Source of the DNA: Macrostomum lignano
Lineage: Eukaryota
Reading direction: 5' to 3'
DNA length: 64,000 nucleotides
Assembly (NCBI GenBank): GCA_002269645.1
Contig: NIVC01002891.1
Span: 62,001-126,000 of the forward strand
Made by a program: the position numbers and the translations under genes. Each line of letters begins with the position of its first letter. The first letter of the stretch is position 1. Below are positions 1-63,894 of the stretch, in pieces. The notes beneath the pieces were generated by a model. It worked only from the letters and a program-made list of their open reading frames with translations. It did not search any database and was not told where the DNA came from.

Positions 1-26649
<26,649 letters not shown>

Positions 26650-27982: not shown

Positions 27983-28134
27983 CCCGGGAATTGATTTCGA
28001 TTTTCTATAAATACGATTTGTGTGACGTATTGCGCACCCGCGGCTATACAGCATGCAAAAAACAATCAAAAGCACGTGATAATCGAATCAGGTAAGATAT
28101 ATTCACACTCATTACCTTTATATGTTAGCTTTAA

Positions 28135-35300: not shown

Positions 35301-35755
35301 GCTGCTGTTACATGAGCACTGTGTGGTCAAGGCTGCTGTTACATGAACACTGTGTGGTCAAGGCTGCTGTTACATGAGCACTGTGTGGTCAAGGCTGCTG
35401 TTACATGAGCACTGTGTGGTCAAGGCTGCTGTTACATGAGCACTGTGTGGTCAAGGCTGCTGTTACATGAACACTGTGTGGTCAAGGCTGCTGTTACATG
35501 AGCACTGTGTGGTCAAGGCTGCTGTTACATGAGCACTGTGTGGTCAAGGCTGCTGTTACATGAGCACTGTGTGGTCAAGGCTGCTGTTACATGAGCACTG
35601 TGTGGTCAAGGCTGCTGTTACATGAGCACTGTGTGGTCAAGGCTGCTGTTACATGAACACTGTGTGGTCAAGGCTGCTGTTACATGAACACTGTGTGGTC
35701 AAGGCTGCTGTTACATGAACAGTGACTGTGAGTTACATGACTGTGGTCAAGGCTC
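32328..35755. repeat. 31-bp satellite array (~110 copies)
   Basis: Unit GGCTGCTGTTACATGAGCACTGTGTGGTCAA with point variants. Confidence 0.98.
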
Positions 35756-36425: not shown

Positions 36426-39400
36426 TCAGCTGTGAATGGCCTTGTCCAGGTGATTTGGAGCGTCAGCAAACCAAGACTTGAGCTTGAAGGCTTCGGCCAG
36501 CAGCAGGGTGACCTCCTCGTCGCCCCACTGATGCGTTGGCAGGTCCTGCAGCATCAGCATGAGGCCTTGGAAGTCCGATTCGCGTTTGAGGTCGCGCGAG
36601 AAGCGCAGTAGGAATGCAGCGCACACGTACAGGTGAAAATGTGAGAAGCCGTCAACTTCAGACTGCGGGATTCATGAGATGTGGCGTGAAGAATCTCCAT
36701 CAAATTTGTGGCATTTGAAATCCGTTCTAAATTTTTGCAGGATTGTCCCACAATTCTGCCCATTCCGCGCTCGCCTGAGCACACACAAGCGCCAATACTG
36801 TACGCAGGCAGCAACTCATGCACACAGCGTGTTACAGCGGCTCTGATTTTCTAAGCGTCAGGCATGTGCACTCTCTGTGCCTTGGGGTGGGAACTAATAG
36901 CATCTCATTGGAATTATTACTGTAGAATCTCATTAGAGCTTATACAATCTTACTAGGAGAACTAATAGCATCTCATTGGAACTAATAGCATCTCATTAGG
37001 GAAACTAATAGCATCTTATTAGGGAAACTAATAGCATCTCATTAGGGGAACTAATAGCATCTCATTAGGGGAACTAACAGCATCTTATTAGTTAGGGAAA
37101 CTAATAGCATCTCATTAGGGAAACTAATAGCATCTTATTAGGGAAACTAAAAGCATCTCATTAGGGGAACTAAAAGCATCTCATTAGGGAAACTAATAGC
37201 ATCCCATTAGGGGAATTAATAGCATCTCATTAAGGGAACTAATAGCATCTCACTGGAACTAATAGCAACTCATTGTTGAAACTAATAGAATCTCATTAGA
37301 GCTAATAGCTGTAATTCTACTGTTATTAGACACTATTAGATTCTACTATTATACACCCATAATGGCCAACCATCAAGGTACCGAGAGTGTGCATTCCAGA
37401 TGATGGGAAAGTCAGGGCGGCTGTACACTCCATGTAAATTGCCTCAGCGCTGGTTGTGAAACGATATCGTCAAAGGGCTCCCTGCGAATTTTGTTTTTTT
37501 TCTAACCCGCTTGTCAGACACTCACGTGATACGTGTCCCACAGCCGGATAATGCAGCGCAAAGGAATCTCCCGCATTAGTAAATTATTCATCCAGCGGAA
37601 GGCGAATTGCAGGTACTCAACATCGTGCCGTTCCAGGTGCGAATCCAAATCACCTGATAAATAAATTTGGGAATAAAGACGGGTTCAGAGAGGCTTTTGG
37701 ATTGGGATTTACGATCATAATAAATTTTACGGCTAAATCTATGGCAATATGGAATATAAAAGCTACGTAGTTTACCTGAAGAGGGGCAAGATTACTAGTC
37801 TAATATACTAGTTAAACATTATGAATAAAAATAGACAAATTAGAGATTATAAAAGCTACCCCAAGGGGGGGGGCAAAACAGCTAGTCTAATATACTAATT
37901 GAACATTATGAATATGCATAGACAGATAGAAATTATAAAAGCTACCCCAGGGGGGGGGCAAAACGGCTAGTCTAATATACTAATTAAGCATTATGAATAT
38001 ATATGGGCAGATTAGAGTCGATAAAAGCTGGGGTTGACTACTAGTCAAAAATACCAAAATTGCTTAATATGAAGAAACTTTATTAATTAGCAATCTCACT
38101 ACCCACCATCAACTCGTTGTATAATCTTCCTGAGTGCCAGCACATTCTGCTGGATGCCAGGCTGCGGGAACACGAAGTTCTCCTGTATGGTGTCCAGCAG
38201 TGCCGACAGGGACCAATAGCAGTCTGCCTCGATGCTGGCTAATTCACTATCGTTCGGCGGCTCGCCGCGCAATCTCAAACGATCGCTCGAGTCAACGTCT
38301 ACAGTGCAATATTCGGATAGGTAAACTATGAAATATGGCGTTACAAGGTCGTTCATGCCCTGCACGTAAGTGCTCGCCGGTCGGCGCATGCTCCAGATGA
38401 ACAGTATTCGGGCGAACACCTGGCAAGAGGTAAATTTTGATAGGAAAATTATAGGATAGTAGGTGAGAAATGGCTAAAATTAATGAAAAATTTCTACTAG
38501 TCTGAGCTATCATTCCGTGGACCATAGACTATACTGTACAATAATTCTACACCACTAAAGTACAGTCATGCCGCGGACCATAGACTATACTGTACAATAA
38601 TTCTACACCACTAAAGTACAGTTATGCCGCGGACCAGACTTTACTGTACAATAATTCTACACCACTAAAGTACAGTCATGCCGCAGACCATAGACTATAC
38701 TGTACAATAATTCTACACCACTAAAGTACAGTCATGCCGCAGACCATAGACTATACTGTACAATAATTCTACAACACTAAAGTACAGTCATGCCGCGGAC
38801 CATAGATTATGCTGTACAATAATTCTACAACACTAAAGTACAGTCATGCCGCGGACAATAGACTATACTGTACAATAATTCTACAACACTAAAGTACAGT
38901 CATGCCGCGGACCATAGATTATGCTGTACAATAACTTGTCTTTTGTCTACATTCCATGCCTGATTTTGAAAGTTCCAAAACTAAACTAATACTCAATTTA
39001 AATTGAGCATGCCTAAATCATACTCATTCTCAAATTTTGCAATCCAATCTGTTTATAACTTAAGTTTAAGGAAACCATTTAAGACACGCATCGACATGGT
39101 AGGTGCCGCCATAAACCATTACCTGATGAAACTGAGTATGCTCAGCCAGCACAGTCATGCGCACCAAATCCTTCAATATCTGCTTGTACATGCCGTCGTT
39201 AGCCGGCTGAGTTCTCTTGCCATAGTATTCGTCAACCATGCCAGCGTACATTCGTCGTTTCTCTTGAAGCACCGCGGCCCGCCTAGAGGAATTCACCGGT
39301 GCATATTTAATGAGCAGTTTCCACACAATCGGGCGCACAGTATGCGTGACGCCAGACCAGGCCAGCCGGCGCAGCTCGTCCATATTGGTGGCGGCAGCGC

Positions 39401-40823
39401 CTATCAGGGAGGCGAATTTCGACTCCTTCTCAACTGTGTCGGCCGACTTGCCGCCGCTAGCGTTACTGCCGTCGCTGCCGCCGCCGCCAGCGTCCTCTGA
39501 CAGTCTACGGTGGGCGCAATAGATACTGTGAATCTGAGCTGTTGAATAGCCACTCTGACGTACGCCTAGACCGGGCGCTGGAAGCTTCGGTTTTGCTCGG
39601 TTTGGCTGCTGCCGTTGCTGTTGTGGTTGTTGCTGCTGCTGCTGCTGCTGCAGTTCTTTGGCAGATTGAGCAGACAATGCGACTGAATAAGTCGCCTTGC
39701 TGCTGCTGCCAACCGATCGGCGATGATTCTCAATCACCTGCGGGTGCGCGGATATAAATATAGCAAGCGGCACCCTCAACTGGCACTGACCCAATTGCCC
39801 AGCAACCTCTTATGGAGGATTCAGCAACACGGGAGCCCTAAAATTAACCTGTGCGGCCTTGCCAAGTCTTCATACTTCATTCATCATCAGCATCTCGATC
39901 AAACGCATGCCTGCATCATCTCTGACTTCGGAGTTTTGGACCTTCAGGCACTGCTGCGGAAATGTCCGACGACTCAGCTAATCAAGCCTCGGACACTGGG
40001 CAAACTTGAACTACTCGGCAGTCTCTCAACTGGGCTTAACAGTAACCATGTCTAAGACCCAATTTACACATTAGCCGATGAAATTGGTACCAAGGCCAAG
40101 AAGCGTCCCAGAATCATTTGCGTCGTCATAGAAACCTTTCAGAGTCGTTGCATGTTAAAACAGGTAAAAGAAAAAAAGTAAAAGTGGCCAAAGAGAGTCG
40201 CTTAAGGTTAACAATTTTAGGCGTTTTATTGTCTGCGACTCTGGGGCTGTAGAGTCATATCTGAGGCGTGCCGGAGTCGCTGTAAAATCACGGGAGTTGA
40301 TTCTAAAGCGCATCTATAACAACTCTATTTAGCCTACTTTGGTTAGTAGAAAGTAAAGCGCTGACACAACGACTCTTCGACGACTCTTTACGATTCTTCA
40401 ACTCACGTGATGCACTCGTGACTCAACAATCGCCTCTCCATCGCATTACAATAGTTTGAGTCGTGAGTTGTTTACAAGGATTCTTTAGCAATTCTCGTCA
40501 TGGTAACATTTTCAATGGGTTGATCATATATATTACATCACTGCTAATTACCTGATTAGCGGTGGCGCTAGCCAATGAAGCCGAGTGCTGCACCTGGCTG
40601 AGAAACTCCTCATCATTGGCATCCCAGACGTCGTCTGTGCCCCGGTTGAACTTGTCAAAAGCCAGCCGGCTCTGCGAATTGTTTGACGCAATGATTGCCG
40701 CTTTCACAGTCTGCTGGCCTAGCTGAGAGGGAGAGCAGGCCGAAGATGGCCACCAGGTTTGTACAGCTTGCTAGCGCAATTGATGGAGCCAAAGTGCTGT
40801 ACGCTGCTGCGTGTAGGAGGCAT
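36426..40823 (-). CDS. TBC1D22: TBC1 domain family member 22 (Rab GTPase-activating protein)
   Basis: Exons 40754-40823 (start uncertain), 40552-40718, 39123-39737, 38107-38419, 37526-37653, 36426-36662, all phase-consistent. Motifs LRRLAWSG, VRPIVWKLL, YVQGMNDLVTPY, EYLQFAFRWMNNLLMRE, RLWDTY, FHLYVCAAFL. Confidence 0.92.
36890..37310. repeat. ~23-bp minisatellite in a TBC1D22 intron
   Basis: Unit ACTAATAGCATCTCATTAGGGAA. Confidence 0.9.
38520..38935. repeat. 56-bp minisatellite (~7 copies) in a TBC1D22 intron
   Basis: Unit CCATAGACTATACTGTACAATAATTCTACACCACTAAAGTACAGTCATGCCGCGGA. Confidence 0.92.
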
Positions 40824-47540: not shown

Positions 47541-49057
47541 ATTATGCTATGTCTAATTTCAATTCTATCCTTTTAAATAAAGAATGATATATATACTTGT
47601 GAGCATTTGTTTCACTATAGGAATTCTTATAATTGTTTGCTAAGCACAAATTTAAAGCAAAAAAATATTGAACAAAAATGTAATATTGCCACAAATATAC
47701 CTATACTGGCTATAGTATACAATATAATATATTGCATAATATAATATACATATATATATATATAATATATGTTTTTATTTAATATAAAATACTTAATATA
47801 ATTTGTATTTAATACATGATATAATTTAACAAAATTACTTATTTAATAATATTACTATTTGCTTTTCATAGACCATACTTAACATTAGATCCTAGTAACT
47901 AAATATTGTAACTTAAAAATAGGACTTAAACCAATGTTACTAAAGTATCTGTAAATGAAACAACTGGCAAAACAAAACAGTAGGTCTATACTATAGGCCT
48001 AGTATTCAAAAATTTCAATTCAATTATATTTTTCATATGTGATTCTGTGTGAACTAAAGCCTTATTGAATGTATTCTTTATATTTATGTTGAGATATGTC
48101 TATTTATAACAGTTCATTTAGAAATAGTAAAATTAGAACAGAAGCTAGAAATGATAAAAATTGCCGGTGGTTCTGCTGCTGCAAAATAAGCTGCTGCTTG
48201 TCTAATCTCTAATAATCGTTTCGTCGAAAAAGAAAAAATTGTGTTTCGAAATCAGAGGTTCTTGTTACAAAAGAGATTTTTTAATGTATTTATTTTAAAT
48301 ATTTTTTATTTAGGGCACAAAAAGAAAGTTTGAGTAAACTTTTTATTTTCAGTTTTTTTTAGCTCGGGAGGTTTTGAATTTGTTTTAGCAAATCGGCGCG
48401 ATAAATAATTCAAATTTTCGGATTACATTACGACTAGTGGCTCCGGCTTGATCGAGCTCAGACCTTGTTTGCTCAACTAAAAAAATTCTTTGACTCAGTG
48501 ATTAGCACAATACACAACTAGCAGACTCAACTTTTTAATTTTTCAGATTTAATTACTAACTTTGAAGTATACCTCAGGTCAATTGTATTGGATCCCAGTC
48601 AACAGGTGGCGATATCTTAAAGAAGGTAGTGTTAATTAATACTCTCTGTTGTCTGGGCGTACTTAAAATTCGATTTTGTGAATGGGGTGGGTTAATTAGG
48701 TGTCAGGATTGACTGAATCAATTCATCAAAAAGAGCAGTTCGTCTTTCTCTTAAATTTTGAATGCAAAATTATTGAATTACTTAACTAAGTGGAGCGGAA
48801 TTTTTTGCCTTTAAAGCTAAATGTGGTAGAACAGCACGCTTGATAATGAGAAGTAAAAGAAAGGAGATTGCGAGCATTTTCATTAGAACGACATGTTTCG
48901 CCTAACTTTAGGCATCATCGGGCAGATTGGAATTTATTTAATTTAAGTCAAAACGTAGAGTATAAATACATTTCAGTGGCAGATAGTCAGTGATGCACAA
49001 GATCGTAATAACAAAACACGGGGGAGTCAACAGATCAAAACCGAGACAGACAGAGAA

Positions 49058-49101
<44 letters not shown>

Positions 49102-49120
49102 CCGGGTAGTGGGTGTACGT

Positions 49121-50599
49121 TTAGAACACTCTCAGGAGAGCACCGGCCCCGGAATAACCCAACTGTTTATTTAAAGTTGGTTGCCAGTTTTTAATGTACA
49201 TAGCTTCAATAATCTTAAGGCGATGATCGATATTGCAACTGTGTATGATAGTAAACCTATCCTTTTGTTCACTGTTGGCGCATTCACTACAGGCCATAAG
49301 ATGGTCTTGCACTGCTGATGGCTTTAACCAGTGTTCTCTGCCCCTAACATACAAGTGCCGTTTCGATTTACCTAGGTAGGTAACTCTCTGATCAACAGAG
49401 CACTGGAATTGGTAGACGACACCTGCACGTAGTTGCAGAGGCACACGGCTTTTGAGCTTAGAGACATACTGGCCAACTTTATCGCAATAAAAGGTGATTC
49501 TCAGATTATCATTAGAAAACTGCTTAAAGCACCGGAGGAGCGCTTTCTTAAAACTGATCGAAGCCTCGCCAAAGTAGGGGATAGAAAGGTGCCTATATTT
49601 GGTCTGAAACTGATCTTGCTGTTGTTCATTCACATTGGATTTTTGCAAATGTAATTTTTGGTTGAGAAACTTTTTAAGATGGTAGCTAAGCAGAGATTCT
49701 GGGTAATCATTCATACGGAAATATTTAGTGAGATTAGTCACTTCTTCATGGAAATTCTTCCAGCTGTTAGAAATTTCAAAAGCCCGGTGGAGCATGCAGC
49801 GAACCAGGCCGATTTTCCACTGCTTCGGGCAGATCGAATTAAAGTTAAGCAGAAGGCCGGTGAAGGTTGGTTTTCTATAAACTTTGGTCGAAAGCTGCTG
49901 ACCTTCAATGTTAATGTCAATGTCAAGGAACGGTATGGTTTTTCCGCCTCCCTCAACAGTGAATTTGATGTTAGGATGCGTGTTATTTAACAAATCAAGG
50001 AACTTGGTGTGGTCCGCTTTTTTGTCAAAGATCAAAAGCGTGTCATCGACATATCTCTGATAGAATTTAGGAGCGCAGTCGCTTCTCAGCCATTCCTTCT
50101 CCCAATTGGAGAGGCAAATGTTGGCAAGCGTTGGGGCAAGGGGGCTTCCCATGGCGCATCCGTCGATTTGGCGGTAATACTTATCTTGAAAAAGGAAAAT
50201 TCCGCTAGTGGCCATGACCATGAGCTTACGGAACTGATCTTTGCTATACGATGGTCTAGAGCCTTCTTTCGAGTAGACTAAGTCAGTAGCCAGATCAATG
50301 GCGAGATTTAGCGGAATGTTAGTGAACAGTGAGACAATATCAAAGCTAAAAAGCCTATCATCATCATTGAACTCGACCTCAGATAGCGAGTTCAAAAATT
50401 CTTTACTCGAGTTAACATGATAGTCACGTTCAATGTGCGGCTTAATGAGGCTATCCAAGAACTTGGCTAACTGATATTCAGCAGTGTTGACCATAGACAC
50501 AATAGGTCGCAGTGGTTTATCGGGCTTGTGCACTTTGCACATGCCATACATCTGACCTGGTTGGCTGCCGCTTGGGTAGATTTTATAATAAGTATCAGG
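49121..50599 (-). pseudogene. 5'-truncated inverted copy of the Penelope ORF
   Basis: The translation is identical to the C-terminal ~490 aa of the + copy from PDTYYKIYPSG onward. Confidence 0.9.
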
Positions 50600-51112: not shown

Positions 51113-53598
51113 TGAAAATGCTCGCAATCTCCTTTCTTTTACTTCTCATTATCAAGCGTGCTGTTCTACCAGAATTCTACTTTCAAGTGAGCCAACGCTA
51201 TGACGTGACAGTCCAAAGCCTGCGGAAATTGGAAAGAACTGCTACCTGTCTACTGAAATGCCATCTAGACCAACGGTTCCTGTTGAAATGCCTTGAACTG
51301 CAGCTTACGCCTAAGTTTGTGCGCTTCAAAGTGCCTCAATCTGTAGTGTTCAGAAACTTAAAAGGCGTCCATGCTAACTTAGTCAATAAGCAATTCACCT
51401 ACTGCAAGCAGAAAGATAAGAAGCTTACTAAGTCGTTAAAGCATCAGAAGCTTCTCCTACGCCAAAAGACCGGCATTTTAACGTATGCAGCAGTCGTGCA
51501 TTTGATCAACAAGCAAGCCAGGAAGATCAATGAGACAGCTGTACAAAAACAACAAGGCAAACTTCGCAATCTATGGGTTGAGAAGACGAAACACGGTCCT
51601 GACTCCGTCACCAATCTCTCGGATCACGAGCTAACCATCGCGGAGAAGAATGCTCTTCAGTTTGGTCTCAACCAGCCTGTTCTGCCACCTCGCCTTCCTC
51701 GCATCAACATCCAAGCTGCTATCGAGGACGTGGTAAGTGGAGGTACGATTGGGAACACTGACGGAGGCACGGATACCGGAATCAAACCTGAATTCAAAAA
51801 CCACTTAATTACTGCTAGTGATAACTTCTTTGCCAAGGCGCAAAACTACATTAATAACAAGGCCAATCGCTTGCTGCACTGTACTTTGAGATCTTTGAAA
51901 AACAATGAAAATATCCGCATACTTAAATACGATAAAGGTAACGGCACTGCCATCTTGAATGTCACTGACTACAATGAAAAGATGAGAAGCATTTTAAGTG
52001 ACGGATCTAAGTTTAAGTGTCTCGGGGAACATTCTTTAGTTACTACCTCGCACCCTATCTTAAAAAATGAGCGCAAAATTCAAACCTTTCTTTCCCAGCA
52101 TATCAAAAAACACGTTAAGCCTGATACTTATTATAAAATCTACCCAAGCGGCAGCCAACCAGGTCAGATGTATGGCATGTGCAAAGTGCACAAGCCCGAT
52201 AAACCACTGCGACCTATTGTGTCTATGGTCAACACTGCTGAATATCAGTTAGCCAAGTTCTTGGATAGCCTCATTAAGCCGCACATTGAACGTGACTATC
52301 ATGTTAACTCGAGTAAAGAATTTTTGAACTCGCTATCTGAGGTCGAGTTCAATGATGATGATAGGCTTTTTAGCTTTGATATTGTCTCACTGTTCACTAA
52401 CATTCCGCTAAATCTCGCCATTGATCTGGCTACTGACTTAGTCTACTCGAAAGAAGGCTCTAGACCATCGTATAGCAAAGATCAGTTCCGTAAGCTCATG
52501 GTCATGGCCACTAGCGGAATTTTCCTTTTTCAAGATAAGTATTACCGCCAAATCGACGGATGCGCCATGGGAAGCCCCCTTGCCCCAACGCTTGCCAACA
52601 TTTGCCTCTCCAATTGGGAGAAGGAATGGCTGAGAAGCGACTGCGCTCCTAAATTCTATCAGAGATATGTCGATGACACGCTTTTGATCTTTGACAAAAA
52701 AGCGGACCACACCAAGTTCCTTGATTTGTTAAATAACACGCATCCTAACATCAAATTCACTGTTGAGGGAGGCGGAAAAACCATACCGTTCCTTGACATT
52801 GACATTAACATTGAAGGTCAGCAGCTTTCGACCAAAGTTTATAGAAAACCAACCTTCACCGGCCTTCTGCTTAACTTTAATTCGATCTGCCCGAAGCAGT
52901 GGAAAATCGGCCTGGTTCGCTGCATGCTCCACCGGGCTTTTGAAATTTCTAACAGCTGGAAGAATTTCCATGAAGAAGTGACTAATCTCACTAAATATTT
53001 CCGTATGAATGATTACCCAGAATCTCTGCTTAGCTACCATCTTAAAAAGTTTCTCAACCAAAAATTACATTTGCAAAAATCCAATGTGAATGAACAACAG
53101 CAAGATCAGTTTCAGACCAAATATAGGCACCTTTCTATCCCCTACTTTGGCGAGGCTTCGATCAGTTTTAAGAAAGCGCTCCTCCGGTGCTTTAAGCAGT
53201 TTTCTAATGATAATCTGAGAATCACCTTTTATTGCGATAAAGTTGGCCAGTATGTCTCTAAGCTCAAAAGCCGTGTGCCTCTGCAACTACGTGCAGGTGT
53301 CGTCTACCAATTCCAGTGCTCTGTTGATCAGAGAGTTACCTACCTAGGTAAATCGAAACGGCACTTGTATGTTAGGGGCAGAGAACACTGGTTAAAGCCA
53401 TCAGCAGTGCAAGACCATCTTATGGCCTGTAGTGAATGCGCCAACAGTGAACAAAAGGATAGGTTTACTATCATACACAGTTGCAATATCGATCATCGCC
53501 TTAAGATTATTGAAGCTATGTACATTAAAAACTGGCAACCAACTTTAAATAAACAGTTGGGTTATTCCGGGGCCGGTGCTCTCCTGAGAGTGTTCTAA
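51112..53598 (+). CDS. Penelope-like polyprotein: reverse transcriptase + GIY-YIG endonuclease
   Basis: RT motifs SFDIVSLFTNIP, QIDGCAMGSPLAPTLANI, RYVDD; C-terminal GVVYQFQC...TYLGKSKRHLYVRGREH. The 828-aa frame is intact; the true start may be spliced. Confidence 0.93.
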   Translation: MKMLAISFLLLLIIKRAVLPEFYFQVSQRYDVTVQSLRKLERTATCLLKCHLDQRFLLKCLELQLTPKFVRFKVPQSVVFRNLKGVHANLVNKQFTYCKQKDKKLTKSLKHQKLLLRQKTGILTYAAVVHLINKQARKINETAVQKQQGKLRNLWVEKTKHGPDSVTNLSDHELTIAEKNALQFGLNQPVLPPRLPRINIQAAIEDVVSGGTIGNTDGGTDTGIKPEFKNHLITASDNFFAKAQNYINNKANRLLHCTLRSLKNNENIRILKYDKGNGTAILNVTDYNEKMRSILSDGSKFKCLGEHSLVTTSHPILKNERKIQTFLSQHIKKHVKPDTYYKIYPSGSQPGQMYGMCKVHKPDKPLRPIVSMVNTAEYQLAKFLDSLIKPHIERDYHVNSSKEFLNSLSEVEFNDDDRLFSFDIVSLFTNIPLNLAIDLATDLVYSKEGSRPSYSKDQFRKLMVMATSGIFLFQDKYYRQIDGCAMGSPLAPTLANICLSNWEKEWLRSDCAPKFYQRYVDDTLLIFDKKADHTKFLDLLNNTHPNIKFTVEGGGKTIPFLDIDINIEGQQLSTKVYRKPTFTGLLLNFNSICPKQWKIGLVRCMLHRAFEISNSWKNFHEEVTNLTKYFRMNDYPESLLSYHLKKFLNQKLHLQKSNVNEQQQDQFQTKYRHLSIPYFGEASISFKKALLRCFKQFSNDNLRITFYCDKVGQYVSKLKSRVPLQLRAGVVYQFQCSVDQRVTYLGKSKRHLYVRGREHWLKPSAVQDHLMACSECANSEQKDRFTIIHSCNIDHRLKIIEAMYIKNWQPTLNKQLGYSGAGALLRVF

Positions 53599-53617
53599 AC
53601 GTACACCCACTACCCGG

Positions 53618-53663
<46 letters not shown>

Positions 53664-55446
53664 TTCTCTGTCTGTCTCGGTTTTGATCTGTTGACTCCCC
53701 CGTGTTTTGTTATTACGATCTTGTGCATCACTGACTATCTGCCACTGAAATGTATTTATACTCTACGTTTTGACTTAAATTAAATAAATTCCAATCTGCC
53801 CGATGATGCCTAAAGTTAGGCGAAACATGTCGTTCTAATGAAAATGCTCGCAATCTCCTTTCTTTTAAAGCTAAATGTAGCTACCATTTCCTAATCTATA
53901 GGGGCAGAAGTTCTACTTTTGTGTCCCTGTTAGATTTTTATCCCATGATAAAATTAGCAAGACTTGATACATAAATTACTTAGATACTAGAACTGTAATT
54001 TAATTTGTGGTGGTTTGATTAAGTTGTATTATGATATTAATTCAGATACCCCAGCAAATTCTGATACCCCCCGCTCCACTTAGTTATGTAATTTAAAAAT
54101 TTTGCATTTCAAATGCTAGCCTGCCTCATTCTACTTAGATCCTGCGTGGGTTTGGTCCAACTCGGATGGCAAGGGATCACAGGGGACGCGCAGAGTTATT
54201 CACGGGTCCAGGCCGCGTGCACAACCATAATGCAAGCTATTTATAAATATATATTGAGCTAGTACTCCCAGGCAAATGTTGTTCTATATTACATTTGGCT
54301 CATATCTTTCCTATGATGAAACTAGCTCGTGACGAGTGAGCATACATTTTACCTATCAAATTTTCTCTTACAGTTAAATTAAGAGATGAAGAAGGCAGGG
54401 AACGAATCGATGATGGATGTACCTTCGCCACTTAGGACCACAATTAGCCTCAACCATTGCACTCAAAAGCGAGCGGTAATGAACCAGTTTGAACTCAGAC
54501 AATTCAAATTCACCTGAAAGTGTCAGAAATTCGGGCAATGAGTAATTAACGGCCGAAAACTCAAGACACTGCAGGATGCGCCGATGGCGCGGTTGCTGAA
54601 GCACAAGGCCCACCAAGCAATTAGGGCAGGAGGGCGAACATCACAGGCCACGCTTTTCAAGCCATGTCAAACTTGAGCTGATTGAATCAATGGAACAAAA
54701 ATTCTCCCGGATGTTGAAACTGACAAATTGTTCGTCAAGAGAGGGGCTGCAGCTTGAGAGAGGGACCCTTCTATGTATCGGGAGGAGAGACTGGCGAAAA
54801 TTAGTCCGAGACTAATTATTAACTCTCACGCGCAAGCTATAGAGAGCTTACACCGGAACTTACGGAAGCTTTAATGGGCCCAATCACTGTTCAAACACTT
54901 ATCAATGACTATTAAAATACACTAAAATAGAATTTTATGACCTCCACAATTGCGTTAGCTAATTTAGTAGGCACCAAATGCGCTAGTGCTTATGGTGATA
55001 AAAGGGCCTCATGAGTGTTAACGAGAATCAGAGCCACTTAATTGTTTAGTTTGCAAGCAAAAAGAGAATCAGAAAAAGCATCAAGACACACTGAAGACTT
55101 TACTAAATGGAAGGCATTTTACTGCAAGCTGCTCGTGGCGTCTGCAGTGGCCATCTATACGCGAAGTTGAAAAAATAAAAGAGGGGCGGCTGCAGATAAC
55201 AGGTGCGTCAGACAGAGGCATGGAGTCCCAGGTGGACTTTGGCATCTGGATTGGAAACAAACCAGATTGCAGACACCCAGGCATCTATGCTCTGAACTCC
55301 GCGACTCTTGTTTTCCAGCTTCCATGCCCCTCTGTCTCTCTGTGTTCGTATTTTTGCAATTGTCTCACTCCTCTGCTTCATAAATGTGAGCGCGAGCGCA
55401 GCAGCTGCGCAGACCTAAAAAACTTCAACCAGCGCACCTGCCCAGA

Positions 55447-58400
55447 ATGGCCCAGTCAACTCGATCAGGTTCGGGCGGGTCCGCTGACAGTCGTTTCGAA
55501 TTACCCGCCATCAACACCCGGCACAACCCGCACCCACACAGGTGCGTCCACATCAGCTCCCTGCACGGCTGCCAGGTGCCCAGCGTGGTCGATGATCAAA
55601 TGCCACTGCATCTGCACGTGTGAGTTCCTTTGGTGCTGAGTTCCTTTGGTGCTGAGTTCCTTTGTTGCTGAGTTCCTTTGTTGCTGAGTTCCTTTGTTGC
55701 TGAGTTCCTTTGGTACTGAGTTCCTTTGTTGCTGAGTTCCTTTGTTGCTGAGTTCCTTTGGTACTGAGTTCCTTTGTTGCTGAGTTCCTTTGTTGCTGAG
55801 TTCCTTTGGTACTGAGTTCCTTTGTTGCTGAGTTCCTTTGTTGCTGAGTTCCTTTGTTTCTGAGTTCCTTTGTTGCTGAGTTCCTTTGTTGCTGAGTTCC
55901 TTTGTTGCTGAGTTCCTTTGGTACTGAGTTCCTTTGTTGCTGAGTTCCTTTGTTGCTGAGTTCCTTTGGTACTGAGTTCCTTTGTTGCTGAGTTCCTTTG
56001 TTGCTGAGTTCCTTTGGTGCTGAGTTCCTTTGGTACTGAGTTCCTTTGTTGCTGAGTTCCTTTGGTGCTGAGTTCCTTTGTTGCTGAGTTCCTTTGTTGC
56101 TGAGTTCCTTTGTTGCTGAGTTCCTTTGTTGCTGAGTTCCTTTGGTACTGAGTTCCTTTGGTGCTGAGTTCCTTTGGTGCTGAGTTCCTTTGTTGCTGAG
56201 TTCCTTTGGTGCTGAGTTCCTTTGGTGCTGAGTTCCTTTGTTGCTGAGTTCCTTTGGTACTGAGTTCCTTTGTTGCTGAGTTCCTTTGGTACTGAGTTCC
56301 CTTGTTGCTGAGTTCCTTTGTTGCTGAGTTCCTTTGGTGCTGAGTTCCTTTGTTGCTGAGTTCCTTTGGTGCTGAGTTTCTGTTCGTGGGTGCTGAGTAT
56401 CTGTTCGTGGGTGCTGAGGATCTGTTCGTGGGTGCTGAGTACCTGTTTGTGGGTGCTGAGTACCTGTTCGTGGGTGCTGAGTACCTGTTCGTGGGTGCTG
56501 AGTACCTGTTCGTGGGTGCTGAGTACCTGTTCGTGGGTGCTGAGTACCTGTTCGTGGGTGCTGAGTACCTGTTCGTGGGTGCTGAGTACCTGTTCGTGGG
56601 TGCTGAGTACCTGTTCGTGGGTGCTGAGTACCTGTTCGTGGGTGCTGAGTACCTGTTCGTGGGTGCTGAGTACTTTTTCTTGGGTGCGACTCTGAATTCC
56701 TGCTCTCCAGATGCGTTCAATTCGCTTTCCTGTATCAATACTAAATATTCGTTAAAAACCAAAATTGAAATGAAATTTATAGAATTTTAATTTTTTTTTG
56801 CGCACTACTGACAGACAATAATTACCAATAAAAAGCAGTACATTGAGAGTTTAGCTGATCTTCAATTAAACTTGCTGGAAATCCGCTCAGCTGCTACCCG
56901 ACAGCCCGGCCGGAGGTGCTGCGCGCGGCCGCTGCCAAGCCCAGCGAGCAGCTCAACGGTCTGGCGAAACCTGAGCACCTTGAGCAGTTTTCTCGGCTGC
57001 TGGCTAAGGATAAGTCCGAGTCCTGTAGTGCCTGGCGCGGTGCGCTGTCCAGCCTCACCCGGGAGACTTTCGGCGTCGGCGGCGACGGCAGCAGCAGTGA
57101 CGGCGCCGTTCCGGAACGGCCCAGCCGGACTCGAGCGGGTGAAACTCGGTTTTTCGGGGTGATAGTCTAGAGTGCCAGAAGGGTGACGGAAGGGTTACAA
57201 CACAGAGTGACAGAAGGGTGACGGCAGAGGGTGCTATAACAGTGACACTACTATGGCCTCTCTCTGCCTCTCTCCCTGCCTCTCTCCCTGCCTCTCTCCC
57301 TGCCTCTCTCCCTGCCTCTCTCCCTGCCTCTCTCCCTGCCTCTCTCCCTGCCTCTCTCCTTGCCTCTCTCCCTGCCTCTCTCCCTGCCTCTCTCGCTGCT
57401 TCTCTCGCTGCTTCTCTCCCTGCCTCTCTCCCTGCCTCTCTCCCTGCCTCTCTCCCTGCCTCTCTCCCTGCCTCTCTCTCTGCCTCTCTCCCTGCCTCTC
57501 TCCCTGCCTCTCTCCCTGCCTCTCTCCCTGCCTCTCTCGCTGCTTCTCTCGCTGCTTCTCTCCCTGCCTCTCTCCCTGCCTCTCTCCCTGCCTCTCTCCC
57601 TGCCTCTCTCCCTGCCTCTCTCCCTGCCTCTCTCCCTGCCTCTCTCCCTGCCTCTCCCCCTGCCTCTCCAGATTAAGAAATTAACCCAAGCCTGTGTAAA
57701 GCTGTTCGTCCTTAAAATAAGCACTATATTGTTGTTTATTTATCACCGTCCTCATACCTAGAGACAAAGAAGTTGGATTGTTTTTCTCTCTATAGGTACT
57801 TTAGTTTGTAAAATGTAATAACAAATGGAATGAGAATAGCATCATAATAATTATGTACATATTTCTAACAGTGTACAATGCTGGTTACAAACGGTAAATC
57901 AGAATAGTTCTGTGAGAATCCGACTTGACAAAGTTTCGTTTCAATGAAACGATCGATTATTTATAATTGGGCTTGGGGTGGTCTGCTAGCCTCGGTGTAC
58001 AATGGAAATGGAGAAGCTGTCTGATTGGTCGGACAGCCGGACCTCTCTCAGACTCTTGCCCATTGAACCTCCACCCCAACCCCCAACCCAGACTGTTGCA
58101 TTAGCACAAGGGTTTGCAAAGGCAATTTTCAAATTATCATTCTAAATAATTAGGGGTGGGTACACTGCACAATATAAACTCATACGTCTTCAACCATCGT
58201 GTGTGTTTCAATACCGATTGCCAATCTAATTGACTGAGCGAATTGTCAAAAATGTCAGCTCGACTGCGTCCGTTGTTGATTGCGTTGGCTCTTTGGGCCT
58301 CATTGACGCTGGCAGCCCCTCCCTTTGGAACTGACACCGGTAACAACGGCAGTGACGACGATTGGAAAGTATCCGAAACTGGTGCTGGCAGCAAGGACGA

Positions 58401-61400
58401 CGATTTAAAAGTGTTCAAAACCGGTGCTGGAAGCAAGGACGACGACTGGAAAGTGTCCAAAACCGGTGCTGGCAGTAAGCAAAACGCTGGTACCAAAGAC
58501 GACGACTCAAATGTGGCCAAAACCGGTGCTGCTAAAAAGAACGATGACTGGAAAGTGTCCAAAACCAATGCTGGCAGCAAGGACGACGACTGGAAAGTGT
58601 CCAAAACCAATCCTGGCAGCAAGGACGACGACTGGAAAGTGTCCAAAACCTATGCTGGCAGCAAGGACGACGACTGGAAAGTGTCCAAAACCAATCCTGG
58701 CAGCAAGGACGACGACTGGAAAGTGTCCAAAACCAATGCTGGCAGCAAGAACGACGACTGGAAAGTGTCCAAAACCAATGCTGGCAGCAAGAACGACGAC
58801 TGGAAAGTGTCCAAAACCAACGCTGGCAGCAAGAACGACGATTGGAAAGTGCCCAAAACCAATCCTGGCAGCAAAGACGACGACTGGAAAGTGTCCAAAA
58901 CCAATGCTGGCAGCAAGAACGACGATTGGAAAGTGCCCAAAACCAATCCTGGCAGCAAGGACGACGACTGGAAAGTGTCCAAAACCAATGCTGGCAGCAA
59001 GAACGACGATTGGAAAGTGCCCAAAACCAATCCTGGCAGCAAGGACAACGACTGGAAAGTGTCCAAAACCAATCCTGGCAGCAAGGACGACGACTGGAAA
59101 GTGCCAAAAACATATGCTGGCAGCAAGAACGACGACTGGAAAGTGTCCAAAACCAATGCTGGCAGCAAGAACGACGACTGGAAAGTGTCCAAAACCAATG
59201 CTGGGAGCAAGAACGACGATTCAAGGAAAGTGTCCAAAACCAATGCTGGCAGCAAGAACGACGATTGGAAAGTGCCCAAAACCAATCCTGGCAGCAAGGA
59301 CGACGACTGGAAAGTGTCCAAAACCAATGCTGGCAGCAAGAACGACGATTGGAAAGTGCCCAAAACCAATCCTGGCAGCAAGGACAACGACTGGAAAGTG
59401 TCCAAAACCAATCCTGGCAGCAAGGACGACGACTGGAAAGTGCCAAAAACCAATGCTGGCAGCAAGAACGACGACTGGAAAGTGTCCAAAACCAATGCTG
59501 GCAGCAAGAACGACGACTGGAAAGTGTCCAAAACCAATGCTGGGAGCAAGAACGACGATTCAAGGAAAGTGTCCAGAACCAATGCTGGCAGCAAGAACGA
59601 CGATTGGAAAGTGCCCAAAACCAATCCTGGCAGCAAGGACGATGACTGGAAAGTGTCCAAAGCCGTTGCTGGCAACATGGAAAACACTGGTACCAAGGAA
59701 GAAGACTGGAAAGTGTCCAAAACCGGTGCTGGCGATAAGGAAAAAAACACTGGTACCAAAGGCAAAGACGACTGGAAAGTGCCCAAAACCAATGCTGGCA
59801 GCAAGAACGACGACTGGAAAGTGTCCAAAACCAATGCTGGCAGCAAGAACGACGATTGGAAAGTGCCCAAAAGCGGTGTCGGTAGCAAGGACGACGACTG
59901 GAAAGTGCCCAAAACCAATGCTGGCAGCAAGGACAACGACTGGAAAGTGCCCAAGACCAATCCTGGCAGCAAGGACAACGACTGGAAAGTGCCCAAAACC
60001 AATGCTGGCAGCAAGGGCGACGACTGGAAAGTGTCCAAAACCAATGCTGGCAGCAAGAACGACGACTGGAAAGTGCCCAAAAGCGGTGTCGGTAGCAAGG
60101 ACGACGACTGGAAAGTGCCCAAAAACGGTGCTGGCAGCAAGAACGACGACTGGAAAGTGTCCAAAACCAATGCTGGCAGCAAGAACGACGACTGGAAAGT
60201 GTCCAAAACCAATGCTGGCAGCAAGAACGACGACTGGAAAGTGTCCAAAACCAATGCTGGCAGCAAGAACGACGACTGGAAAGTGCCCAAAACCAATACT
60301 GGCAGCAAGGACGACGACTGGAAAGTGTCCAAAACTGTTGCTGGCAACAAGGAAAACACTGGTACCAAGGACTACGACTGGAAAGTGTCCAAAACCAATG
60401 CTGGTAGCAAGAATGACGACTGGAAAGTGTCCAAAACCAATGCTGGCAGCAAGAACGACGACTGGAAAGTGTCCAAAACCAATGCTGGCAGCAAGAACGA
60501 CGACTGGAAAGTGCCCAAAACCAATACTGGCAGCAAGGACGACGACTGGAAAGTGTCCAAAACCAATGCTGGTAGCAAGAACGACGACTGGAAAGTGCCC
60601 AAAACCAATGCTGGTAGCAAGCACGACGATTGGAAAGTGTCCGAAACCGGTGCTGCTAAAAAGGACGACGACTTGAAAGAGTCCAAAACCGGTGCTGGAA
60701 GCAAGGACGACGACTGGAAAGTGGCAAAAACTGGTGCTGAGAGCAACGGAAAGAGTATCTGGAAGGCAGCCAGCACCGATTCTGAGAACAACAACAACTG
60801 GAAGGCAGCCAACACCGGTTCTGAGAGCAGCAACGACAACGGGAAGGCAGCGAACACCGGATCTGAGAGCAACAACGAAAACTGGAAGGCAGCCAGCACC
60901 GGTTCTGAGAGCAACAACAACTGGAAGGCAGCCAACACCGGTTCTGAGAGCAGCAACGACAACGGGAAGGCAGCCAACACCGGTACTGAGAGCAACAACG
61001 ACAACTGGAAGGCAGCCAACACCGGTTCTGAAAGCAACAACGACAAATGGAAGGCAGCCAACACCGGTTCTGAAAGCAACAACGACAACTGGAAGGCAGC
61101 CAACACCGGTTCTGAAAGCAGCAACGACAACTGGAAGGCAGCCAACACCGGTACTGAAAGCAGCAACGACAACTGGAAGGCAGCCAACACCGGATCTGAG
61201 AGCAACGACAACTGGAAGGCAGCCAACACCGGTTCTGAAAGCAACAACGACAACTGGAAGGCAGCCAACACCGGTTCTGAAAGCAGCAACGACAACTGGA
61301 AGGCAGCCAACACCGGTTCTGAGAGCAACAGCGACAACTGGAAGGCAGCCAACACCGGTACTGAAAGCAGCAACGACAACTGGAAGGCAGCCAACACCGG

Positions 61401-63815
61401 TACTGAAAGCAGCAACGACAACTGGAAGGCAGCCAACACCGGTACTGAAAGCAGCAACGACAACTGGAAGGCAGCCAACACCGGATCTGAGAGCAACGAC
61501 AACTGGAAGGCAGCCAATACCGGTACTGAAAGCAGCAATAACTGGAAGGCAGCCAACACCGGTACTGAGAGCAGCAACGACAACTGGAAGGCAGCCAACA
61601 CCGGTTCTGAGAGCAGCAACGACAACTGGAAGGCAGCCAACACCGGATCTGAAAGCAACAACGACAACTGGAAGGCAGCCAACACCGGTTCTGAGAGCAG
61701 CAACGACAACTGGAAGGCAGCCAACACCGGTTCTGAGAGCAACAACGACAACTGGAAGGCAGCCAACACCGGTACTGAAAGCAGCAACGACAACTGGAAG
61801 GCAGCCAACACCGGTACTGAAAGCAGCAACGACAACTGGAAGGCAGCCAACACCGGATCTGAGAGCAACGACAACTGGAAGGCAGCCAACACCGGATCTG
61901 AGAGCAACGACAACTGGAAGGCAGCCAATACCGGTACTGAAAGCAGCAATAACTGGAAGGCAGCCAACACCGGTACTGAGAGCAGCAACGACAACTGGAA
62001 GGCAGCCAACACCGGTTCTGAGAGCAGCAACGACAACTGGAAGGCAGCCAACACCGGATCTGAAAGCAACAACGACAACTGGAAGGCAGCCAACACCGGA
62101 TCTGAAAACAACGATAACTGGAAGGCAGCCAACACCGGATCTGAGAGCAACGACAACTGGAAGGCAGCCAACACCGGTACTGAAAGCAGCAACAACTGGA
62201 AGGCAGCCAACACCGGTACTGAAAGCAGCAACGACAACTGGAAGGCAGCCAACACCGGATCTGTAAGCAACAACGACAACTGGAAGGCAGCCAACACCGG
62301 ATCTGAGAGCAACGACAACTGGAAGGCAGCCAACACCGGTACTGAGAGCAACAACGACAACTGGAAGGCAGCCAACACCGGTTCTGAAAGCAACGACAAC
62401 TGGAAGGCAGCCAACACCGGTTCTGAAAGCAACGACAACTGGAAGGCAGCCAACACCGGTTCTGAAAGCAACGACAACTGGAAGGCAGCCAACACCGGTA
62501 CTGAAAGCAACGACAACTGGAAGGCAGCCAACACCGGTACTGAAAGCAGCAACAACTGGAAGGCAGCCAACACCGACTTCCAGTCAGCCAGCAGCGAGAG
62601 CAAAGACAGCAACTACATTGAGTACAAGACAAACAGTCAGCTGGGCTCAGACTCTGAGAGTTCCTTCAATGCCAAAAAGAAGGGCGGCGCGAGCGGTGCC
62701 GAATTTAGCAAGCAGTACAACACTTTCGACAATGCCTACAGCGACAGCAGCGACCAGCAGCAGCAGCAACAAGAACAGCAGGAAGTCGGTAGCGCCAATC
62801 TCAACAGTTACGACTGGAACTTCGGCGACAACAATGAACTCCGCGCTGATTACTGAGCGCTTTGAATTGGCTTTTGATGTCAATGCGAACTTCATGCTGT
62901 TACTGAAGTCGTTTCTTTCGTTTGATTTCTGATTAGTAATGATTCGTTGTTTTTGTTCAAAATATACCACTTGTTGATAAAACAATTTGCTTGGTTTTTG
63001 TCGCTGATTTTTGACTGACTTATGAAAATAGGGTTAAAAAACAAGTATTTTATAGATTTGAAAGTACATGGGATGGATGGAAAAATGGAAATCACTAGGT
63101 ATATTGTGGATAGTTTCTCGTCAATATAGGATTTCCGATGTTGTGAAGCTAATGTGAATACCGAAGATAATGTATGGCATCATTCTAATAAGAGCCTATA
63201 CAAGCAGTTGCTTGGATTATACACTGCGTGTTCTGAATTCTGAACATTTTGGAGTGTGCGGATCCCTCAGTAACATGGGGTATTCCCTTAGTGACCTGGG
63301 TATTCCCTTAGTGACATGGGTATTCCCTTAGTGACATGGGGTATTCCCTTAGTGACATGGGTATTCCCTTAGTGACATGGGGTATTCCCTTAGTGACATG
63401 GGGTATTCCCTTGGTGACATGGGGTATTCCCTTAGTGACATGGGGTATTCCCTCAGTAAAATGAGGGAATTATGTATTCCCTCCTTATTTCAACATAAAA
63501 ACTCATCCAGTCTCCTCCCTCATCAAACTGCAAATCTCAGGCCCACCTGCAAATCCCCATCTGGCCAAGGAGGCGCAGCGACTGTACAGTCCGCTGACGG
63601 GCCGCCTGGTGGCCGGTGGCGACGCTGCAGCGACATCTGCCATCGGCAAGCTGGAGCTGCTGCAGGGCTCCGTGATAAGCATGCTGTGCCGCATCCTGCA
63701 GACTCAGGACCGAGCCGCTGTGCAGGCCTGGCTGATGGCCGCTTCGCCTAGAGAGCGCGAACTCGTGACCGACATTATCCAATCCTCGGTGGCCAACCGG
63801 GACGAGTATTTTGTG
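55447..63815 (+). CDS. TBATA/SPATIAL-like protein, exons 55447-55619, 56891-57138, 63541-63815, continuing past the window
   Basis: Splice phases agree (2, then 1). Motifs [23 protein letters not shown] and [28 protein letters not shown] resemble conserved blocks of TBATA as I recall them; not confirmed by a search. Confidence 0.65.
55620..56675. repeat. 16-bp then 21-bp minisatellites filling intron 1 of the TBATA-like gene
   Basis: CTGAGTTCCTTTGTTG, then CTGAGTACCTGTTCGTGGGTG. Confidence 0.95.
57255..57668. repeat. 12-bp minisatellite
   Basis: Unit CTCTCTCCCTGC. Confidence 0.95.
58020..58180 (+). promoter_or_regulatory. Putative internal promoter of the repeat-protein gene
   Basis: TATAAA at 58173-58178, GGGGTGGG at 58153-58160 and an inverted CCAAT (ATTGG) near 58024, all upstream of the ATG at 58252. 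Confidence 0.4.
58252..62856 (+). CDS. Intronless secreted ~1,534-aa tandem-repeat protein ([14 protein letters not shown] x~55, then [14 protein letters not shown] x~44) of unknown function
   Basis: 4.6-kb open frame with a signal-peptide-like start ([22 protein letters not shown]), 39/42-bp repeat units varying by whole codons, and a unique C-terminal tail before the stop. Confidence 0.85.
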   Translation: MSARLRPLLIALALWASLTLAAPPFGTDTGNNGSDDDWKVSETGAGSKDDDLKVFKTGAGSKDDDWKVSKTGAGSKQNAGTKDDDSNVAKTGAAKKNDDWKVSKTNAGSKDDDWKVSKTNPGSKDDDWKVSKTYAGSKDDDWKVSKTNPGSKDDDWKVSKTNAGSKNDDWKVSKTNAGSKNDDWKVSKTNAGSKNDDWKVPKTNPGSKDDDWKVSKTNAGSKNDDWKVPKTNPGSKDDDWKVSKTNAGSKNDDWKVPKTNPGSKDNDWKVSKTNPGSKDDDWKVPKTYAGSKNDDWKVSKTNAGSKNDDWKVSKTNAGSKNDDSRKVSKTNAGSKNDDWKVPKTNPGSKDDDWKVSKTNAGSKNDDWKVPKTNPGSKDNDWKVSKTNPGSKDDDWKVPKTNAGSKNDDWKVSKTNAGSKNDDWKVSKTNAGSKNDDSRKVSRTNAGSKNDDWKVPKTNPGSKDDDWKVSKAVAGNMENTGTKEEDWKVSKTGAGDKEKNTGTKGKDDWKVPKTNAGSKNDDWKVSKTNAGSKNDDWKVPKSGVGSKDDDWKVPKTNAGSKDNDWKVPKTNPGSKDNDWKVPKTNAGSKGDDWKVSKTNAGSKNDDWKVPKSGVGSKDDDWKVPKNGAGSKNDDWKVSKTNAGSKNDDWKVSKTNAGSKNDDWKVSKTNAGSKNDDWKVPKTNTGSKDDDWKVSKTVAGNKENTGTKDYDWKVSKTNAGSKNDDWKVSKTNAGSKNDDWKVSKTNAGSKNDDWKVPKTNTGSKDDDWKVSKTNAGSKNDDWKVPKTNAGSKHDDWKVSETGAAKKDDDLKESKTGAGSKDDDWKVAKTGAESNGKSIWKAASTDSENNNNWKAANTGSESSNDNGKAANTGSESNNENWKAASTGSESNNNWKAANTGSESSNDNGKAANTGTESNNDNWKAANTGSESNNDKWKAANTGSESNNDNWKAANTGSESSNDNWKAANTGTESSNDNWKAANTGSESNDNWKAANTGSESNNDNWKAANTGSESSNDNWKAANTGSESNSDNWKAANTGTESSNDNWKAANTGTESSNDNWKAANTGTESSNDNWKAANTGSESNDNWKAANTGTESSNNWKAANTGTESSNDNWKAANTGSESSNDNWKAANTGSESNNDNWKAANTGSESSNDNWKAANTGSESNNDNWKAANTGTESSNDNWKAANTGTESSNDNWKAANTGSESNDNWKAANTGSESNDNWKAANTGTESSNNWKAANTGTESSNDNWKAANTGSESSNDNWKAANTGSESNNDNWKAANTGSENNDNWKAANTGSESNDNWKAANTGTESSNNWKAANTGTESSNDNWKAANTGSVSNNDNWKAANTGSESNDNWKAANTGTESNNDNWKAANTGSESNDNWKAANTGSESNDNWKAANTGSESNDNWKAANTGTESNDNWKAANTGTESSNNWKAANTDFQSASSESKDSNYIEYKTNSQLGSDSESSFNAKKKGGASGAEFSKQYNTFDNAYSDSSDQQQQQQEQQEVGSANLNSYDWNFGDNNELRADY
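63265..63455. repeat. 21-22-bp minisatellite
   Basis: Unit CCTTAGTGACATGGGGTATTC. Confidence 0.9.
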
Positions 63816-63894
63816 GTGAGGCTCGACTGAGTTAATTGGGTAGAATTTTACTGCCGAAACTCGGCTGAGATAGAGAGACTTGAGCATAATTATA

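Follow-up and report, generated by a model that had tools for sequence, protein, structure and literature searches.

The flatworm Macrostomum lignano is free-living and known for its glue, seminal-fluid and other gland secretions. In the laboratory it is used as a model of temporary bioadhesion, of seminal-fluid biology and of regeneration, and the material proteins that it is known to secrete are large orphans built of repeats. Here we analyzed a 64,000-nucleotide (nt) stretch of its genome (contig NIVC01002891.1, forward-strand positions 62,001 to 126,000), called the window in the following and numbered from its first letter. The subject of our analysis is an open reading frame (ORF) of 1,534 codons at 58252-62856 on the plus strand, which encodes a long array of Trp-periodic repeats and which, judged from its sequence, is likely to be a real protein-coding gene.

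Among the secretions of M. lignano are large adhesive proteins that are repetitive and orphan (PMC6410801), and of these Mlig-ap1 and Mlig-ap2 are the closest biological analogues of the product predicted from this ORF. They originate from the same species, are secreted and very repetitive, have no homologues outside the lineage and are explained by a charge-based working model (PMC6410801). Mlig-ap1 combines Lys/Arg-rich regions and a calculated isoelectric point (pI) above 14 with Cys-rich EGF, lectin and other domains, and Mlig-ap2 carries repeats of 255 and 221 amino acids (aa) together with vWD and TSP1 domains (PMC6410801), whereas the predicted product is built from Trp units of 13–14 aa, contains no Cys and no known domain and is divided into blocks with a pI of 9.3 and 4.4.

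Mucins and insect glue proteins are also comparable, as they are secreted and have short hydrophilic units strung together in long tandem arrays, and in these proteins as in the predicted product the number of units probably varies via unequal exchange. In contrast to mucins, Pro, Thr and Ser together make up only about 23% of the predicted product (S 13%, T 8%, P 2%), Trp, Lys, Asp and Asn dominate and no Cys-rich flanking domains are present. A mucin-type Pro/Thr/Ser protein was therefore rejected on these values and on the lack of Cys.

A third group to be compared are the prion-like low-complexity domains, in which aromatic stickers placed at even distances within polar spacers drive phase separation (PMC8638251; bioRxiv 10.1101/2021.01.01.425046). 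They share with the predicted product the uniformly spaced aromatics, the polar spacers rich in Gly, Ser, Asn and Thr, the very low hydrophobicity and the predicted disorder (PMC8638251). Prion-like domains are intracellular, use Tyr and Phe, carry few charges and comprise 100–200 residues, whereas the M. lignano product is predicted to be secreted, uses Trp, has 21–39% charged residues in its basic and acidic blocks and extends over 1,400 residues. Even aromatics, polar spacers and predicted disorder, the sequence features of the sticker-and-spacer class, are all found in it, and the resemblance would be functional only and not one of homology.

A predicted two-block Trp-repeat protein and its possible material state

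An earlier sequence-only reading of the window had placed the ORF exactly where we find it (Table 1) and had described a signal-peptide-like start, about 55 units of one kind, an abrupt switch to about 44 units of another kind and a tail of about 90 aa with KKK and a poly-Q run. When we divided the protein according to its Trp spacing, this architecture was reproduced with 55 and 45 units in blocks A and B, respectively, and a tail of 90 aa. At the N-terminus two Arg are followed by a 14-residue hydrophobic core, in which the Kyte-Doolittle mean over nine residues reaches 2.7, and by a small-residue T-L-A motif, after which the von Heijne -3/-1 rule predicts cleavage.

The consensus unit of block A is SK[DN]DDWKV[SP]KTN[AP]G with Trp being kept in 50 of the 55 units. 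Block B units are Asn-rich, begin with S[SN], end with [ST]E, are 13 or 14 aa long and have kept Trp in 43 of 45 cases. Although the change from A to B is abrupt and the two types of unit differ in charge, they are related, as they have the skeleton S-x-N-D-x-W-K-x-x-x-T in common and are identical at 29 of 42 nt (13 of 42 differ). Neighbouring Trp residues are separated by 14 residues 64 times and by 13 residues 17 times; counted over aromatic residues, the corresponding numbers are 63 and 19, which is 82 of 109 intervals. Larger blocks are duplicated as well, as had been noticed before: an exact copy of 226 nt at an offset of 339 nt in block A carries the variant DDSRKVS, which is thus present twice, a further higher-order duplication in block A is found at an offset of 228 nt, and block B contains an exact copy of 236 nt at an offset of 411 nt.

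The predicted protein has a mass of about 163 kDa and not a single Cys, and Asn, Lys, Ser, Asp, Thr and Gly account for 71% of its residues. Block A (87 kDa, pI 9.3) is rich in Lys and Asp with a net charge of +31, and block B (65 kDa, pI 4.4) is rich in Asn and Ser with a net charge of -36. Hydrophobic residues amount to 14% in block A and 7.5% in block B, and with a mean hydropathy of 0.32 the protein lies well under the boundary between folded and unfolded proteins (0.42–0.43) in the charge-hydropathy plot, so that disorder is predicted from its composition. Three kinds of modification or anchoring were dropped as candidates: N-glycosylation with only one sequon among 235 Asn, C-mannosylation as neither a WxxW nor a WxxC motif is present, and a glycosylphosphatidylinositol or transmembrane anchor, because the whole protein has no second hydrophobic segment (maximum Kyte-Doolittle mean over 19 residues -0.44) and its C-terminus is hydrophilic.

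The reading that we favour, tentatively and with a little less than an even chance of being right as a whole, is that of a genuine lineage-specific, single-exon nested gene encoding a block polyampholyte with Trp stickers, which would be secreted, disordered for the most part and able to condense into an extracellular material. We infer secretion, disorder and condensation from sequence properties only. In both halves one Trp sticker per 13–14 residues would sit in a polar spacer, and the protein would condense in secretory granules by making multivalent contacts of the Trp-Trp and Lys-Trp (cation-pi) type and by the attraction between the basic and the acidic half. Once released, it would become a cohesive and hydrated gel or coat that could serve as mucus, glue, egg coat or seminal material. 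The array itself would grow and be homogenised as single 42-nt units and blocks of several units are exchanged unequally, with length changes being tolerated in frame only. Glue, mucus, eggshell and seminal-fluid material had already been named as possible classes in the sequence-only reading, and this suggestion is sensible because M. lignano is known for its gland secretions.

A folded array has to be weighed against this disordered polyampholyte, as a beta-solenoid or amyloid-like structure had been suggested earlier. Each unit would then consist of a strand and a turn, and the array would fold as a long beta-solenoid or cross-beta fibre with stacked Trp/Val (or Trp/Ala) as core ladder and with Asp, Asn and Thr ladders that may bind cations. 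AlphaFold2, which we ran on the repeat blocks without an alignment, indeed draws one strand of 6–9 residues per unit in both blocks (D-W-K-V-S-K-T-N in block A), with Trp and Val on one face of the strand and with the strands in a solenoid-like stack. Also in favour of a solenoid, units of the types ...S..NAG and ...P..NPG alternate in part of block A, which would suit a coil of two units (28 residues), and beta-helix proteins are frequent among the non-significant matches of a Foldseek search against the PDB (best template modelling score 0.57, to SufD). The confidence of the models is low, with a predicted local distance difference test score (pLDDT) of 61 and a predicted template modelling score of 0.58 for block A and 53 and 0.39, respectively, for block B, where four of the five models have a pLDDT of 36 or less, and Foldseek found no match with E < 0.1 in the PDB or among viral models. 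Moreover, AlphaFold2 is known to build unrealistic beta-solenoids for perfect repeats (PMC11795689), the hydrophobic content is low and the composition lies on the disordered side, and in about 18 block A units a Pro (WKVPKT) falls into the middle of the proposed strand. The bacterial ice-nucleation proteins, beta-solenoids with 16-residue coils (PMC9418140), also consist of short units that are nearly identical, number in the dozens and are rich in Thr, Ser, Asn and Gly with one aromatic residue each, and a solenoid is what AlphaFold2 draws for the M. lignano product. The product shows no sequence relationship to them, its models have low confidence, its hydrophobic content is lower and about a third of the A units have a Pro within the putative strand. 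A beta-solenoid is thus possible but unsupported beyond the known modelling bias, and we regard it as unlikely, even if it is the best of the competing explanations.

Coding gene or open minisatellite

That the array is translated at all is suggested first by its phase. No long internal repeat has an offset other than a multiple of three, and exact runs at the remaining offsets do not exceed 11 nt, a length expected from noise. The 42-nt register is left in 23 cases, each time by +/-3 or +/-18 nt, and these cases represent at least six distinct kinds of event, so that over 4.3 kb of array only offsets and length variants in multiples of three are observed. This agrees with the sequence-only reading, according to which the units vary by whole codons, unlike the minisatellites nearby: among the other arrays in the window whose period is a multiple of three, six of ten carry deviations that are not, and most of the other register-varying minisatellites in the window deviate by non-multiples of three as well. 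For an array that is not translated, the chance that six or more kinds of length change, along with all of the block duplications, stay in frame would be about (1/3)^6.

The codon positions point in the same direction. The GC content at the first, second and third position is 0.41, 0.48 and 0.69 for the whole ORF and 0.48, 0.38 and 0.70 for the tail, where an exon-like pattern is obtained solely in the frame of the ORF; in the neighbouring exons the second position is lowest and the third highest (0.62–0.74). In addition, the signal-like segment begins exactly at the first ATG, downstream of a TATA box and an in-frame stop codon, by which position 58252 becomes the first possible start. The TATA box is the sole TATA-like hexamer within 57701-58251, the upstream stretch of about 550 nt that was scanned. 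Finally, the two unit families share both the frame and their skeleton despite their divergence. Phase, codon-position GC, start context and two diverged in-frame blocks thus support a coding function, and it is on these grounds that we consider a real gene likely.

Several observations weigh against our reading or speak for the view that the ORF is not a gene but an intronic 42-nt minisatellite whose unit has no stops by chance and which is read through from a nearby ATG. Across the array four other frames stay open for 524–750 codons (1.6–2.3 kb), and over the tail two more are open. The length of the ORF taken by itself is for this reason weak evidence, and so is the argument made earlier from the 4.6-kb open frame to selection on the protein. 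Differences from the unit consensus are mainly non-synonymous (69 against 18 synonymous in block A and 31 against 11 in block B), and without a synonymous excess the unit variation gives neither support of the dN/dS type (non-synonymous versus synonymous rates) nor a signal of purifying selection. The genome of M. lignano is reported to consist of about 15% simple and tandem repeat (PMC5730564), so that a 42-nt intronic array is unremarkable by itself; about 40 tandem arrays are present in the 64-kb window, and the intron with the ORF also holds minisatellites of 12 and 21 nt. No canonical AATAAA was found in the 744 nt scanned downstream of the stop codon. The product does not occur in the UniRef proteome of M. 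lignano in the searched collections, where it appears to be unannotated, while the same set returned the TBC1D22 protein encoded elsewhere in the window. Its diagnostic peptides are absent from four supplements on adhesive footprints (PMC6410801), which is a weak test as it depends on the search database of the authors. The condensation mechanism, moreover, is read from composition alone. Vertebrate 'hypothetical proteins' with similar Trp periods of 13 and 14 aa also resemble translated minisatellites.

A dN/dS-style test among the units proved uninformative, as the unit counts are dominated by a few propagated non-synonymous variants (N/D at position 3, S/P at position 9, A/P and S/T at position 13). 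The window also contains a 31-nt minisatellite at 32329-35718, which extends over 3.4 kb with 109 copies, 97% matching and no register shift. It is similar in size to the array studied here, so array length alone is no coding sign at this locus.

Taking both sides together, the in-frame length changes, the rule-breaking of the comparable arrays, the shared frame of two diverged unit families, the position of the signal-like peptide and the exon-like tail are what speaks against a fortuitously open minisatellite, and we consider it quite unlikely, somewhat more so than the solenoid.

A further idea is that of a de novo birth, in which an intronic 42-nt minisatellite expanded 3' of a sequence capable of acting as a signal peptide, with the product being a one-molecule complex coacervate of basic Trp/Lys and acidic Trp/Asn blocks. 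We consider this improbable. If true, it would represent a previously undescribed design of a flatworm secretion, be it glue, mucus, egg coat or seminal material, and a tandem repeat that was turned into a structural protein in the intron of another gene.

Search for relatives

In order to find relatives of the predicted protein, we used several kinds of search. An exact-sequence look-up showed that the product is not on record. A word-indexed homology search with the full protein gave no hits but has low weight, as the tool behaved erratically on a positive control, missing a 164-aa TBC1D22 query at 1e-10 while a longer query including the same exons gave E = 2.6e-150. No Pfam-A family reached its gathering threshold, and only Tsi3 (PF22211) came near it with 24.1 bits against a cut-off of 26 and without a separately significant stretch. 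The sequence search of the PDB gave chance lectin matches only, Rfam gave nothing relevant and no paralogue of the ORF was found in the 64-kb window. A literature search for the strings of the unit peptides brought no true match, and peptides of the product were found neither in the footprint mass-spectrometry supplements (PMC6410801) nor in the supplements of a seminal-fluid screen.

An index-free HMMER scan of 1.84 billion cluster representatives at E <= 1e-3 returned 322 hits with a best E = 4.6e-55. They comprise coiled coils, an insert of a kinase-like protein, phage tail repeats, a fungal peptide precursor with KR-separated units and vertebrate minisatellite-like ORFs, and a period of 13 or 14 residues is the only property that they have in common. 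None of the 322 hits covers the signal peptide or the tail. As homologues they were rejected, since in a permutation test nothing but the periodic Trp was found to match. The family stays unrecognised, as the sequence-only reading had stated, with the searches of Pfam, PDB sequences and the 1.84 billion representatives giving no family match other than artefacts of periodicity, and we conclude that the putative protein is without a detectable homologue.

Among the hits are P0143 (Bos mutus ELR60503.1), P0079 (Liparis tanakae TNN28338.1) and P0081 (Cetorhinus maximus XP_078422491.1), which carry Trp repeats of 13 or 14 residues. These vertebrate 'hypothetical proteins' look like translated minisatellites, and they cross-match any periodic query at tiny E-values.

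One of the database matches bears on the question whether the protein is cut into about 100 small Trp peptides, similar to the precursors of neuropeptides, antimicrobial peptides or fungal repeat peptides. The fungal match P0128, in which KR sites stand between FSDDWGVAKEKREA units, has the appearance of such a precursor, and also in the M. lignano product a signal peptide would be followed by many near-identical short units. We nevertheless rejected a polyprotein as very improbable, because the 1,534 residues contain only five dibasic sites, none of them flanking units or periodic, no Gly-Lys/Arg amidation motifs at the unit ends and no Cys.

The lowest probability of all, next to nil, is given to homology with the 14-residue Trp repeats of phage and actinobacterial tail proteins and a horizontal transfer of the gene. 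Its starting point are a match of the product to phrog_24159 (tail fiber protein, E = 8e-13), the occurrence of Trp at a period of 13 or 14 in 56 of the best 150 HMMER hits, many of the hits with this period having units of the type DLDLRW[RA]V.N.VT[SG] or SRSTxWxV and matching phrog_6079 (tail protein), some units of P0010 that read RWKVSNTVTS, and the lack of introns in the M. lignano gene. With Trp excluded, the score of the units against the profile is only -3.9 to +1.7 over 13 positions with permutation P values of 0.02–0.58, so that apart from Trp the likeness does not exceed chance; the small E-values arise because each Trp contributes about 11 score units and tens of units add up. The conserved Val positions are missing from block B, and the third-position GC content and the promoter context are host-like.

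The likeness to these tail proteins (phrog_6079 and phrog_24159; e.g. P0007, P0010, P0019, P0030 and P0051) lies in one Trp per 14 residues over hundreds of residues, in a Val two residues after Trp, which is seen in block A, and in the lack of a Pfam family and of a solved structure. The phage repeats are more hydrophobic and have a second conserved Val at position +6, where the M. lignano units have Asn or Gly, and they are located behind LamG, Spherulin4 or beta-helix domains, whereas no other domain was found in the M. lignano product. Furthermore, unlike the tail proteins, the latter is encoded in a flatworm intron, begins with a eukaryotic signal-like peptide and shows host-like codon usage.

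As an observation apart from the M. lignano gene, the class of phage and actinobacterial tail proteins, with the five named proteins and about 25 others, contains 15–35 copies of a 14-residue W-x-V repeat. It may deserve a structural study of its own.

Genomic setting and meaning

The ORF is located between exons on the same strand that jointly match the Pfam family SPATIAL (TBATA), and as far as can be judged from these matches the candidate gene is nested, in the same orientation, in an intron of about 6.4 kb of a SPATIAL/TBATA-like gene. The downstream exon alone scores 45 bits, which increases to 60 bits when the putative first coding exon is added and to 73 bits with the probable middle exon. 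The features of the candidate gene and its host are collected in Table 1.

Table 1. Position of the Trp-repeat ORF, its parts and the exons of its host gene within the window
Feature	Position	Strand	Remarks
Putative first coding exon of the SPATIAL/TBATA-like host	55447..55619	+	MAQST start, RHNPHPHR motif, GTGAGT donor
Probable middle host exon	56859..57167	+	boundaries approximate (stop-to-stop ORF)
TATAAA box, putative core promoter	58173..58178	+	79 nt 5' of the first ATG; promoter role inferred
In-frame stop codon	58231..58233	+	21 nt 5' of the ATG
Trp-repeat ORF	58252..62856	+	1,534 codons, uninterrupted; ATG at 58252, stop (TGA) at 62854-62856
Signal-peptide-like N-terminus	58252..58314	+	from hydropathy profile and sequence; predicted cut after TLA (aa 21), then APP
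Block A	58348..60744	+	aa 33-831, 55 units, 799 aa
Block B	60745..62583	+	aa 832-1444, 45 units, 613 aa
Unique acidic tail of 90 aa and TGA	62584..62856	+	aa 1445-1534; KKK; ends with ...NELRADY
AATATA, possible variant poly(A) signal (weak)	62961..62966	+	105 nt 3' of the stop codon
Host exon 3' of the ORF	63541..63816	+	AG acceptor, GTGAGG donor; Pfam SPATIAL E = 2e-11, profile positions 161-201

Expression could start from the putative TATA promoter. Since M. lignano also makes polycistronic precursors, which trans-splicing resolves (PMC5730564), the ORF might alternatively be expressed as part of the host transcript.

Elsewhere in the window, a TBC1D22 (RabGAP-TBC) gene is located at 36429-39647 on the minus strand, and in a tblastn comparison with the UniRef M. 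lignano protein (A0A1I8H3...) its exons were 98–100% identical in three segments and 92% in a fourth, short one. A search with these exons ranked the M. lignano TBC1D22 well above that of any other species, by which the source of the window is confirmed. Also on the minus strand are a Fibrinogen_C (fibrinogen-related) exon at 17311-17901 and the main exon of mitochondrial ribosomal protein S12 at 27377-28087. Several long GC-rich ORF segments with poly-Ala or poly-Gln are found on this strand between positions 1 and 14000 (e.g. 1473-2084, 3405-3986, 8766-9494 and 10315-11031), separated by minisatellites and without a Pfam match; they may be exons of one large gene. An inverted repeat of 1,557 nt with arms at 49043-50599 and 52120-53676, which are 99% complementary and 1.5 kb apart, has smaller nested inverted repeats and CT-dinucleotide runs at its edges and looks like a foldback or transposon-like element.

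As a whole, the earlier interpretation of the ORF is partly supported: it looks like a real secreted orphan repeat protein, as had been proposed, while the argument from the open frame to selection is weak. If the ORF is not expressed, it would be a caution that minisatellites with a period divisible by three can mimic genes and seed the databases with periodic pseudo-proteins that then cross-match at tiny E-values.

If it is expressed, the gene would be a tractable case of minisatellite dynamics making and keeping a coding repeat within an intron, and its unit would offer a simple peptide motif for biomaterials work. It would also be missing from the protein set of the species, probably since tandem repeats are masked or collapsed in assemblies, and similar proteins may then have been overlooked. 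Within the set of large repetitive orphans secreted by M. lignano, an expressed product would add a new sequence design, with a fixed Trp spacing of 13–14 residues, no Cys and a single chain that is basic in one half and acidic in the other. The gene is in this sense a new design within a familiar class and overturns no expectations.

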